Shown here in pieces: positions 11,091 to 18,359 of a stretch of 64,000 nucleotides of DNA. Numbering within the stretch: position 1 is the stretch's first letter; every line of letters starts with the position of its first letter. A program made the translations under genes and the position numbers. The notes under the pieces are model-generated. The model was not told the DNA's origin and made no database searches. It worked only from the letters and a program-made list of their open reading frames with translations. The stretch is from Octopus sinensis (taxonomy: Eukaryota). Location: the NCBI RefSeq assembly GCF_006345805.1, contig NC_043004.1, positions 82,770,001 to 82,834,000 on the forward strand. Direction: 5' to 3'.

Positions 11091-12041
11091 ATGCAAGTGA
11101 AAGAAACTCAGATGTTTAAACTGCTGGAATTATATCAGAAATTTGATCACTTTAGCCAATCGAGTATGACTGTTTCATCATTGAAATCACCAAAATCTAA
11201 AACAGTTTATTTGCAAGCATTTTATATTCTGTTCTGTACGTATGTGATTATAAACCCTATTCGTCACATTGTTACTTTAGCACAATGTAAAAAAAGGAAT
11301 ACTGATCAACTGTTTGTGTACAGTTACATATTCATTTTCAGAGTTTGTATTTATATCTTTACTTTGTTGAAAATCTTCAACCTATCTAAATTTAAGCTAC
11401 TGACTGAAGAATTTGCCGAAATCAAACTTGAAAATGAAGGTAGAAAATGCCGCAAGTTAATTCTTTTATATTCATTTACGGTATTTTATGCATTTATATG
11501 CGTAACGATCTCTTCTAACATATTAATAGATTTCGTGTTGCCATGCCTTAGTAAAGACTTGTTGGAATATTTTACATATCCGATATCAAACAATATCTTC
11601 AAAGTTTCCTTTTTAACAATACAAGCTACATTTAATTGCATTTCCGCTGTCTATTTGATAGCTGATCTATACGTAGACTTGTTAATCGGATTTACACTCA
11701 GTTATGAGTTCAACAAGTTGGCAAACGAGGCTGAACGATTCGTAACGGAGAAGCAATCCGACCATTCAAATTTCATCAAGAAGCACAAAGATATCACAGA
11801 AATATGTGACGCTCATAATATTATGAGTAGGAAATTGAAATTTGTAAATGAATCTTTACAACTAACGTCAGGATTTATCGTACTTTCTTCCATTCTTAGC
11901 AGTTGCGTTGCAACTTACGTAATAATAAATGACTCACCAAGTATTAAAATCAGCCAACACCTATATTTAGCAATGGTGATGATAGGGTGCTTCATATATT
12001 TGATACTGTTGTTCTGGTGTGGAGTTCATTTGAATAAATCA
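11091..12041 (+). CDS. GRL A1 exon 1 (317 codons, TM1-TM6)
   Basis: ATG at 11091; GT donor at 12042 after AAT AAA TCA. Same length and donor position as the B1 first exon. Confidence 0.88.
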
Positions 12042-13238
12042 GTGAGTATCTTTTACGATAACTTCATAATATCAAATCTTAATTTTATCTTTTTATGTTT
12101 CATCTCTTTCTTCTTTCAGTGTGAAGGCTGTAGTCATGCTCGAGCACCGACTTTGGTATAGCTGCACTATCGCTGATCCATTTTCTTTCATCGGTACTTG
12201 TTGAATGATGGAATCCAAATTTAGTACCCTCGGTTTTCTTACTTTCCGCAAATTAGGATCGTCTTAAGTTTTAATTGGTAGATGGTCGGTTTATATTATG
12301 TCTTGTCTTGTCTTTAGACAGCATTCATCCGGGGTGGGTTGAGCTGACTTCATTCATCCTCAATGCTGCAGCTTGCACAAACGCCGAGCAGACCTGGTGA
12401 TTTGAGGCTAACGACCGCTTGATCTCCAACCACTCCTTATTCCATCAGCGAACGTCGAAGATATGGGGGCCTAGGTCGGGTTCCAGATCAGCCTTGACTG
12501 ACAGAAGCCAGGTTTTTCGCTGTCCACCACACCGTTTTGCCAACCCTGAAGGGGAGCTGGGGCAATTGCTTCGTAGATAAATTCTCCAAGCACTTGTAGA
12601 TGAATTCTATCAAGCACTAGTGCGAACGATTCTCCTTTACGGCAGCGAGACATGGCCGATGAGGGTGTAAGATATTAAGCGACTAGAATCCTTCGATAAC
12701 CTCTGTCTACGCCGCATCCGTCGTGTCCGATGGTATCACTTTATATTATAACACGATCTACATTCATTCATGTGTATCTATTACGAATTTCCGTAGGATA
12801 TTTAATCACAAAGCTATTGTGGTATCTAGCTTTCGATCTTATGTTGGCCTCTATACAGTGGTGATCCGTTCAGGTATTAAAATAACTTTTAGTACCAACG
12901 CTTCAGAATCTATCAGAAATATAGAATCGCATAATTTTCTCTTTGCTCTATGGAGCAAAGTCGTAGAAATGTTGACGTAGAAATGAGGCAATATGCTTCG
13001 TGTACCAGTGTTCGATTTCTTCAATGACATCAATATAGACAGCAAATTTGCCCGTTTGATAGGGACCAATTATTTAGGCAGTTGGAATAGTAGAGATACT
13101 GGCGGACTAAATAAATGGCAGGTGGCATTCGTTTTAGTGATTTACACATTGAGTCTTAATCCCAAAGGGAGAACCATACACACACATAACTTACACGCAC
13201 ACACATATATATATATATATATTTACACACACAGCCAT

Positions 13239-13273
<35 letters not shown>

Positions 13274-16924: not shown

Positions 16925-16973
<49 letters not shown>

Positions 16974-18359
16974 AAATTAAATAAGGAAAAAACACACACT
17001 TTACATAGTTTTAATATAATTTTTAATATATCAACAGTTCGCTTTCGCTATTCATGATATTGTGGTTTACTTATTTGAATATGTATTTTCTTAAGACGAA
17101 ATTTTGCCCGTGTTGTGTGTAATGATATTTACGAGTGAATTACTTCACAAGTAGAAAAAATAAGGGGAGGTATTTAGCTACCGTTATTATACAGACAAAA
17201 AAAAAAGGGTTTCGAAATATTTGTTAAGTGAGGGGATTTATGTACAGATTTGAAATATTTAAAAAGATAAAAGTTGGTTATACGTGCATATTAAGACATG
17301 TTCTGTATTTTTCAATGAAAAAAGTGTGTTTATTTAAACGTTCTTGTGGAGAGATTGTGTCTTTGCACTTGTAGAAGGGGAAGAATTTGATATTTGGCTT
17401 GGTGTTATCTGCATATTTTTTTATATGTTCACTGAGAGGAATTTTCCTGTATTGCGGGAAACGGATTTGGTTTTTATGTAGAGTGGATATTTTTCTCAGG
17501 GTCATACTCGTCTATCCAAACGCCAGAGGACTTCACCTTAAGACCCATTGTAGCTGGGCCAGCTTCTGAAAGCGACCGCCTACGCAATTTTCAAGACATC
17601 CCACTGAAACCCTTGCTGAAATGCATCAAAATTTTCATTAGCTATTTTAAGATAAAAATGAATTTGGTTTATTAGTGACTCATGAAAGATCGTGAATACA
17701 ACTTCAACCACAGCGATAAATAAGAAATAAAACGCGAATAATAAAAATAAAAAGAGTATATAATACAATTAAATAATTGAATTTCAAATAAATCGAAAGG
17801 AAAATATTGCGAAGGAGAATGTATTTGTTATATGCTTTGTTACTTTTTGGGGCAGAGATATAGCTTCTTAAAAAAAAAAACTTTGCAATGAAATGCGTTT
17901 TATACTTCCTGATTTTATAAAACGTTTGCAATATTCTGCTACAACCGTTTATCTTTTGAGTTCAAACGTTACCAGTCTTGACATTCTGTCGGTCATACTG
18001 CACAGAGCACAATCTGCCTGCTTAACATTTCGATTCGAGGTTCAGTCGCACACCTTACTCAACCATAAAACTTAATTAAATAATTGATAATTTATGGGCG
18101 CCTTAATGAAAATCGGTAACGAATATATCAGAAGATCTTGAAATCATGACCTAAATGTTTAGTGCCCAAAACTTGCGGTTGCTTAACTGAAACAACCAGT
18201 TTACTTTTCTAGTATAAGTAGTAAATAATGACCTTCAATCCGTATAATTCTCTTCATTCACTGAAAATAGCACATATATAACGTCTCTTTTCTGTTTTTC
18301 AGATGATTGGAAGTTTCATTACTTACATACTTGTGGTAATTCAGACAAAGCCATTATAA
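11091..18359 (+). CDS. Gustatory receptor-like (GRL/7TM chemoreceptor) gene A1, 4 exons: join(11091..12041,15443..15511,16419..16508,18303..18359), 388 aa
   Basis: Exon 1 has six hydrophobic segments and ends ...GVHLNKS|GTGAGT. Exon 2 ccag|[23 protein letters not shown]|gtaaat. Exon 3 tacag|[30 protein letters not shown]|gtaaat. Exon 4 ttcag|[18 protein letters not shown]. All introns are phase 0 and the spliced frame is open (1167 nt). TYxxxxxQ in TM7 plus three C-terminal phase-0 introns are GR/GRL hallmarks. Confidence 0.88.
12605..12733 (+). mobile_element. RTE-clade LINE fragment (copy 56741-56869)
   Basis: FYQALVRTILLYGSETWPMRV*DIKRLESFDNLCLRRIRRVRW matches the RTE post-RT motif LLYGSETW...FDxxCLRRI. 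Confidence 0.75.
13296..13806. mobile_element. MITE with ~110-bp imperfect TIRs (copy ~57435-57945)
   Basis: cgaattagaaatggacgc...tctccgaga..acacac on the left; reverse complement on the right. Confidence 0.65.
14473..15010. mobile_element. ~540-bp non-coding interspersed repeat bounded by (ATT)n on both sides (copy at 59799-60336)
   Basis: Sharp boundaries at ATT tracts; resembles an abundant octopus repeat as I recall it (not database-checked). Confidence 0.55.
15168..15405 (-). mobile_element. Same RLE remnant, shorter and internally deleted (unit I; also ~60452-60690 in unit III)
   Basis: [45 protein letters not shown]; lacks the 35527-35640 and 35160-35380 parts. Confidence 0.72.
15443..15511 (+). 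CDS. GRL cassette copy 1, exon 2 ([23 protein letters not shown])
   Basis: Pyrimidine tract + ccAG acceptor, 69 nt, AAG|GTAAAT donor; conserved in three copies. Confidence 0.8.
15620..15852 (-). mobile_element. tRNA-derived SINE in GRL intron 2 (copies ~35960-36178 and ~60900-61140)
   Basis: Minus strand gtggaggcgtgtggcctagtggttagagtg...ggtttcgattcctggacc (A and B boxes). Confidence 0.78.
16419..16508 (+). CDS. GRL cassette copy 1, exon 3 ([30 protein letters not shown])
   Basis: tacAG acceptor, 90 nt, ACG|GTAAAT donor. Fits the GRL pre-TM7 pattern FLxRL...G(I/F)xxxxxFVI. Confidence 0.85.
17278..17640. mobile_element. Penelope-like element remnants: GIY-YIG C-terminus (- strand) abutting an RT fragment (+ strand); copies ~37930-38300 and ~62620-62990
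   Basis: Minus strand [30 protein letters not shown]; plus strand [28 protein letters not shown]. Confidence 0.7.
18303..18359 (+). CDS. GRL cassette copy 1, exon 4 ([18 protein letters not shown])
   Basis: tcttttctgtttttcAG acceptor; TYxxxxxQ motif; TAA at 18357-18359. Confidence 0.88.
   Translation: MIGSFITYILVVIQTKPL

Follow-up and report, generated by a model that had tools for sequence, protein, structure and literature searches.

Does the long open reading frame (ORF) that begins at position 11091 of a stretch of octopus DNA belong to a receptor-like gene of its own, or is it one of several interchangeable parts of a larger locus? The stretch covers 64,000 nucleotides (nt) of the Octopus sinensis genome (NC_043004.1, positions 82,770,001 to 82,834,000, forward strand), and is referred to here as the window. 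From an apparent 356-amino-acid (aa) ORF and three small exons, a preliminary description of the window had put together a 'hidden intact gene' of the gustatory receptor (GR) and gustatory receptor-like (GRL) superfamily, which we call A1. The name holds in part, as A1 is intact and its exact product is absent from the protein collection searched, but A1 is best read as an alternative large exon rather than as a stand-alone gene. We put at about 0.72 the probability that A1 is an intact, unannotated alternative large 5' exon of the GR-like locus LOC118764608, sharing a cassette of three small exons in the style of Gr39a and Gr28b. The exon structure, the family membership, the many-to-one layout of large exons and cassette, and the purifying constraint are established.

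Exon structure and splicing of A1

The 356-aa ORF (11091-12161, + strand) runs across a consensus splice donor, AAATCA|GTGAGT at 12041/12042, a read-through that the preliminary description had already recognised. When the ORF is ended at this donor and joined to three small exons (Table 1), an open frame of 1167 nt is obtained, coding for 388 aa and a stop, in which all introns are GT-AG and in phase 0; the proposed completion of the frame by exons of 69, 90 and 57 nt is borne out by this splice model. An in-frame stop lies three codons 5' of the A1 ATG. A pyrimidine tract and AG precede each small exon, GTAAAT follows the two non-terminal ones, and all three have lengths that are multiples of 3. 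Together they form cassette 1, which codes for intracellular loop 3, TM7a and the TM7b helix with TYILVVIQ (TM, transmembrane segment). TM7 had been described as absent from the large exon and supplied by the small ones, and it is indeed found there, with TYILVVIQ in exon 4. Only eight ORFs of at least 150 aa are present in the six frames of the window, and five of these come from the A1 gene family (three first-exon ORFs and two exon-3 read-throughs), which argues against a chance assembly of the A1 structure.

The small exons had been thought easy for annotation to miss. This was not borne out, since NCBI already uses them as the 3' end of isoforms X1-X3 of LOC118764608, and XP_036361421 ends in the same 71 aa as the A1 splice model (100% identity). 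With the small exons annotated, the unannotated part is the large exon A1. Exact look-up in a collection of 15 billion proteins found neither the product of A1 nor that of A2, an intact paralogous large exon in the same window, in their long or short forms.

The long and short forms differ in exon 2, which has a second in-frame acceptor, TTTCAG|GGC, 42 nt downstream of the first. Its use leaves an exon of 9 aa (15485-15511) and an A1 product of 374 aa. Both acceptor forms are annotated by NCBI at the paralogous LOC118764607, where X1 and X3 are long and X2 and X4 are short. We think it doubtful, while giving it some credence, that the 374-aa form made through the acceptor at 15485 is the main product in place of the 388-aa form. 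That acceptor (TTTCAG|G) is closer to the consensus and in frame, and the short form is the annotated one in O. bimaculoides LOC106880719 X2 and O. sinensis LOC118764607 X2 and X4; against this, the long form is used in all three NCBI isoforms built on cassette 1 (LOC118764608 X1-X3), and the 14 residues that it adds align with a block, [A/V]H-x-P/I, that is conserved among gastropod and tardigrade GR/GRLs. These residues also raise the score of A2 on the Pfam model 7tm_7 from 30.3 bits in the short form to 35.0 bits, and the 42 nt that encode them differ between cassette 1 and the LOC118764607 cassette by three synonymous changes and one non-synonymous change. The two forms may coexist. Tandem acceptors 42 nt apart are kept in all three cassettes of the window as well as in LOC118764607, the upstream acceptor of cassette 2 being TAG instead of CAG.

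Membership of the GR/GRL superfamily

The criteria applied to GR/GRL proteins are length, seven TM segments, an intracellular N-terminus and longer inner loops (Benton et al., 2020; PMC7746228). At 388 aa with seven hydrophobic segments (approximately 39-64, 80-98, 123-141, 172-201, 261-279, 284-318 and 365-383, with which the AlphaFold2 (AF2) helices agree), A1 is within the range of ~350-500 aa and seven TM. By a simple positive-inside rule, 24 lysine and arginine residues lie in the N-terminus and loops 2-3, 4-5 and 6-7 and six in the other loops, and loop lengths are 24, 59 and 46 aa on the inside compared with 15, 30 and 4 aa on the outside. The charge bias and the loop lengths therefore indicate an intracellular N-terminus, which is the topology that had been anticipated.

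Homologs of A1 in a first protein search came from octopus only. Its paralog A2, joined to cassette 2, scores 35.0 bits on 7tm_7 (PF08395; cut-off 26.6) over profile positions 28-367 of 370, and another octopus protein (P0004) likewise exceeds the cut-off. A1, A2 and four octopus proteins were then built into a profile, which was scored against 1.84 billion representative proteins and retrieved 58, of which 43 are distant; 7tm_7 is found in 31 of these 43 (best E 4e-32), Trehalose_recp in 27 and 7tm_6 in seven. Among the named matches are a 'gustatory receptor for sugar taste 61a-like' of Haliotis, a 'Gustatory receptor' of Hypsibius, and proteins of Littorina and Nucella. The suggested check against 7tm_7 thus succeeds through A2 and the profile relatives and fails for A1 alone. 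A homolog search with a broadened alignment gave six proteins, and the alignment for AF2 became no deeper. Matches of A1 to Vma12, ARM_CUL7_CUL9 and RRP6, seen in single-sequence Pfam and PDB searches, were rejected as weak chance matches.

The gene structure and the TM7 motif agree with this picture. The preliminary description had taken the C-terminal phase-0 introns to be of GR/GRL type, and of the three phase-0 introns found, the first and the third lie at the same position and in the same phase as introns of a tardigrade GR gene (L003), intron 1 at ...LTRE|AHAPL and intron 3 at TFLA|LLGMYCTY. The middle octopus intron has no counterpart in that gene; that it is homologous to the ancestral middle intron is taken from the literature (PMC6175461). 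The TM7 region aligns with G...TY..V..Q of the gastropod and tardigrade relatives. Three of four positions in the motif TYhhhhhQF are kept (T377-Y378-ILVVI-Q384-T385), so that the TYxxxxxQ announced for A1 is present and the final F is not.

Two AF2 models were compared with the PDB using Foldseek; their mean confidence by the predicted local distance difference test (pLDDT) was 61.2 and 60.1, and their predicted template modelling score (pTM) was 0.58 and 0.59. The top 10 matches of one model and the top 17 of the other were insect odorant receptors (ORs), Orco or GRs only, with TM-scores of 0.38-0.63, most of them ~0.5 or above, and all unrelated folds scored 0.29 or less when normalised to query length. 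The comparison that had been proposed with Orco, MhOR5 and BmGr9 gave TM-scores of 0.56 (6c70), 0.62/0.63 (7lid) and 0.51 (8vc2), respectively, and AgOR28 (8v3c) gave 0.57. As in the solved insect channels (Orco, 6C70; MhOR5, 7LIC/7LID; BmGr9, 8VC1/8VC2 and 8UVT/8UVU; Gr43a; Gr64a), helices 4-6 of A1 are predicted to be long and to extend inward, and TM7 to be split into 7a and 7b. Unlike those channels, with which it shares 10-16% identity, A1 has a fold known here from models of modest confidence.

Octopus chemosensation is currently attributed to chemotactile receptors (CRs), derived from nicotinic acetylcholine receptors (nAChRs), and to expansions of G protein-coupled receptors. A1 had been expected to represent a class separate from the nAChR-derived receptors, and this is what we find: Pfam detects no Cys-loop receptor domain in A1 or A2, and no pentameric ligand-gated channel is among the top 50 structural matches listed for either A1 model. 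A chemotactile, nAChR-like identity for A1 was rejected on this domain and fold evidence. Like the pentameric CRs, the octopus GRLs form an expanded, clustered candidate ionotropic sensory family; they differ in belonging to an unrelated fold and family, and for the CRs a function has been shown in suckers.

Several points weigh on the other side. A1 alone has no match to 7tm_7 even at E<=10 and no relevant match among the sequences of solved structures, and its motif ends in T rather than F (TYILVVIQT). Both AF2 models are of moderate confidence (pLDDT 60-61), and the cassette-encoded C-terminus falls below 50. This C-terminus is poorly resolved because the cassette part of the alignment is nearly invariant; adding the tardigrade GR to the alignment brought no gain in confidence (60.1 compared with 61.2). 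An unrelated multi-pass membrane protein that resembles a GR/GRL by chance could be imagined from the missing Pfam match of A1 and its low identity to insect receptors, but it is very improbable in the face of several agreeing lines, namely a paralog above the Pfam cut-off, GR matches of the profile, structural matches to ORs and GRs only, shared introns, the TM7 motif and the charge topology. On profile and model evidence A1 is a member of the GR/GRL family, the seven-transmembrane-domain ion channels (7TMICs), by an assignment that is transitive, passing through paralogs, profiles, gene structure and predicted fold.

Many large exons and one cassette

The wider locus of LOC118764608 (L001, 59.6 kb) contains the first part of the window, with L001 31231-59589 100% identical to window 1-28359 (O. 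sinensis CM016866.1). It holds five intact large exons, at L001 1457, 10001, 16398, 27570 and 42321, the last being A1, with one cassette behind them. Each of the five begins with M..(N/K)(E/Q)T(Q/R)..K.LE.Y and finishes with ...LN(K/R/T)S, after which GT follows; one more, at 6109, is truncated by a (TA)n microsatellite run. The large first exons of the NCBI isoforms sit 14-32 kb 5' of A1. That of X1 (XP_036361421) is the exon at L001 10001, 32 kb upstream, and in X2 and X3 the ends of the large exons at 16398 and 27570 are joined to cassette 1. No second cassette was found in the 59.6 kb of L001 at a permissive E<=1, with cassette peptides and the C-termini of more distant relatives as queries. 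A search for diverged cassettes upstream of the known ones gave noise-level matches only, plus one doubtful relic. This relic (L001 17864-17947), ~500 nt past the large exon at 16398, is a weak (E=0.23) and stop-bearing likeness to cassette exon 3, and is either what is left of a lost private cassette or noise.

The same arrangement is seen at LOC118764607 (L002; CM016866.1:83,161,909-83,269,117, reverse strand, 107 kb). Here seven intact large exons are spread over 87 kb, alongside one with a stop (72456) and two reverse-strand fragments, and the 107 kb again contain one cassette, with E<=1 as the limit here too; the NCBI isoforms of LOC118764607 begin in different large exons. Counting A1 and A2, some 15 large exons are intact in the ~200 kb examined, and the eight listed NCBI isoforms draw on five of these. 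LOC118764607 and a further GRL locus, LOC118764606, lie ~330-430 kb away on the chromosome, and LOC118764606 encodes a more divergent GRL of 408 aa (P0020) that scores 31.7 bits on 7tm_7.

The simplest reading is that a minimum of five large first exons serve one cassette as alternatives, A1 being the cassette-proximal one, and that A1 is not a separate four-exon gene. The opposite view would make A1 an independent gene of four exons that owns cassette 1, with the NCBI joins as artefacts and the upstream exons as orphans or pseudogenes. We regard this as unlikely, because it leaves four other full-length large exons in L001 with ~318 open codons, starts and phase-0 donors in DNA of ~31-38% G+C and no cassette of their own, when truly decaying copies (A3 in the window, L002 72456) quickly show stops. 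It also has to contend with the recurrence of the many-to-one layout at LOC118764607, with seven intact large exons to one cassette, and with the fact that this is the standard layout of alternatively spliced GR genes (PMC2204066; PMC6175461). What speaks for it is that A1 is the large exon nearest to cassette 1, across a 3.4-kb intron, and that the weak exon-3-like relic after L001 16398 could be a decayed private cassette. Two further points, which count against a shared cassette as well, are that the joining of X1-X3 consists of NCBI models, of which X2 and X3 are odd, N-terminally truncated products of 141 aa, and that A2 has its own cassette in the window, where one exon to one cassette thus occurs too.

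The remaining difficulty for our reading is that NCBI models isoforms for three upstream large exons and none for A1, for which RNA sequencing support may be lacking. Taken with an array in birth-and-death turnover, in which A3 is broken, the copy at 55958 is truncated and the A1 exon has been deleted from the second of three duplicated units, this could mark A1 as a pseudo-exon, either transcriptionally silent or newly dead, that has no stop yet and makes no protein. We consider this improbable. A missing gene model is weak evidence, because chemoreceptor transcripts are typically too rare for bulk RNA sequencing, and 317 open codons with a consensus donor persist in A1 in AT-rich DNA.

The pattern of substitution also argues against a dead exon. 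The A1 large exon has its closest relative outside the O. sinensis genome on a 2.3-kb contig (L004) of run SRR11869390, in the form of an intact first-exon ORF that is far closer to A1 than to any other large exon. The match to window 10974-12067 has 70% DNA identity and includes the donor and ~110 nt of 5' flank (L004 536-644) that can still be aligned. The ratio of non-synonymous to synonymous substitution rates (dN/dS) between this exon and A1 is 0.35 at a dS of 0.82 (Nei-Gojobori), and A1 is under purifying selection. Among large-exon paralogs dN/dS is 0.4-0.6. Exons 3 and 4 of cassette 1 differ from those of the LOC118764607 cassette by nine synonymous and two non-synonymous changes (exon 3, two and none; exon 4, seven and two). 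Such ratios would be anticipated where a variable body that faces the ligand is joined to a pore module under tight conservation.

How A1 would be expressed follows from the layout as a proposal. Each large exon would probably have its own promoter, and the tandem large exons would be joined alternatively to the shared cassette. In a pre-mRNA started at the A1 promoter, the sole downstream acceptor would be that of cassette exon 2, and transcripts from upstream exons would splice past A1, because A1 is without an acceptor: by inspection, no pyrimidine tract with AG was seen ahead of the large-exon ATGs. The isoforms would then share their pore helix and each have a ligand-facing body of its own. 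Going by the solved insect ORs and GRs, we would expect the product to serve as a subunit in a tetrameric ligand-gated cation channel, with a ligand pocket formed by TM1-6 of the variable exon and a pore lined by TM7b of the cassette.

Partial conservation among paralogs extends over the 100-200 nt 5' of the large-exon ATGs (for example ...GA(C/A)(G/A)(G/A)AATT(T/A)GAA(T/G)AA..ATG), and these stretches are candidates for per-exon promoters or 5' untranslated regions. A block TTTAT-TTTGC.ATCGG is found at about -190 from the ATGs, the flank of A1 being 10890-11090.

The expansion of the family and the birth-and-death turnover of its exons suggest a chemosensory role. Non-insect GRLs also serve in light sensing, the control of egg laying and development (PMC7746228).

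Comparison with insect loci and duplicated units in the window

In Gr39a-type loci, alternative large first exons feed shared small exons (PMC2204066), and among cockroach GRs there are many alternatively spliced loci, with up to 13 first exons (PMC6175461). The octopus locus is like Drosophila Gr39a, Gr28b and Gr23a and cockroach Gr60a-m in its tandem array of large first exons, each of which brings an ATG of its own, six TM and a 5' donor, followed by three small shared phase-0 exons for TM7 and the C-terminus that are under very strong constraint. Pseudo-exons and the gain and loss of exons within the array are also common to both. The octopus arrangement differs in belonging to a mollusc, in the size of its introns (3-80 kb) and loci (40-87 kb), and in the triplication of the unit of large exons and cassette in segments of ~20 kb; its alternative splicing is deduced from layout and NCBI models rather than from cDNA.

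Work cited in PMC7746228 (Robertson, 2015; Saina, 2015) reports GRLs from molluscs, annelids, echinoderms and cnidarians, and gastropod relatives were retrieved here; compared with the GRL motif, octopus A1 has T for F as the last residue. In the literature searched, which did not cover Robertson (2015), we found no description of cephalopod GRLs or of this architecture outside arthropods. As GRLs in molluscs and the alternative-first-exon design in insects were already known, what is new is that the Gr39a-type layout is present, and expanded, in octopus.

More tentatively, octopus GR-like genes as a whole might be organised as clusters of variable exons with a constant cassette (at least five and at least seven large exons per cassette) that are themselves duplicated as units. 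Through promoter choice, each sensory cell could come to carry a single receptor body on the pore helix common to all, which would amount to a second ionotropic chemoreceptor repertoire beside the CRs, with an architecture either inherited from a protostome ancestor or reinvented in cephalopods. This proposal is speculative, and we would not yet lean on it.

Database entries call cephalopod GR-like channels 'uncharacterized protein', and an annotated product is lacking for the majority of their large exons. The shared-cassette layout provides a rule for annotation, one product per intact large exon, and with it corrected gene counts and isoform-specific probes for the sites of receptor expression. 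It also extends an exon architecture of insects to a mollusc, and bears on whether the small 3' exons, as a reusable 'pore module', go back to an early stage of GR evolution.

Duplication in the window has left three copies of the entire unit of large exon and cassette, in segments of ~20 kb (6216-28358, 31056-47937 and 50256-64000) with 82-97% identity. The second unit has A2 and cassette 2, and the third has A3, the truncated A1-like exon and cassette 3. The segment that matches 10258-15313, and holds the A1 exon, is missing from copy 2. The near-identity of the window cassettes might be taken to mean one shared cassette, a reading that we rejected, as these are three physical copies of a recent duplication.

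Table 1. Coordinates of A1, its paralogs and the three cassettes in the 64,000-nt window.
Feature	Position	Strand	Remarks
A1 large first exon	11091..12041	+	ATG to donor, 317 codons; N-terminus and TM1-TM6, variable receptor body
Intron 1	12042..15442	+	phase 0, GT..AG, 3.4 kb
Constant exon 2	15443..15511	+	69 nt, 23 aa
Constant exon 3	16419..16508	+	90 nt, 30 aa; TM7a/anchor region and start of TM7b
Constant exon 4	18303..18359	+	57 nt including TAA, 18 aa and stop; TM7b with TYxxxxxQ motif
A2 large first exon, intact paralog	28141..29091	+	36% identical to A1 full length, E 8e-64
Cassette 2	35762-35830, 36745-36834, 38936-38992	+	5 nt differences from cassette 1 per 216 nt coding
A3 large exon, A2-like pseudo-exon	47720..48665	+	in-frame stop and frameshift; 5' flank 97% identical to A2 flank
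5'-truncated A1-like large exon	55958..56176	+	matches A1 residues 245-317, 93% aa identity, donor intact
Cassette 3	60727-60795, 61701-61790, 63630-63686	+	changes P>L, V>L, P>Q

The third unit looks degenerate, with both large exons ahead of cassette 3 defective and the truncated copy lacking its first ~244 codons. The DNA around that truncated exon is 97% identical to window 11817-14451, and repeat insertions lie ahead of it (54660-55950). Between cassette 3 and cassette 1 there are three non-synonymous and two synonymous changes. A 345-aa ORF (58672-59709, - strand) lies in the intron that leads from the truncated A1-like exon to cassette 3; it scores 26.9 bits on zf-RVT (cut-off 27.5), a weak match, and is probably the tail of an ORF of a retrotransposon of the non-long-terminal-repeat class.

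A candidate poly(A) signal, ATTAAA, is found as a motif at 18446..18451 (+), 87 nt past the A1 stop, and the same offset is kept behind the stop in all three cassettes (18446, 39079 and 63773). The first ~400 nt of the 3' flank are highly similar between cassettes 1 and 2, the pair compared. Long microsatellites and low-complexity runs of (TA/CA)n and (AAT/ATT)n flank A1 and sit in its intron 1 (10250-10666, 14375-14577 and 14958-15159).

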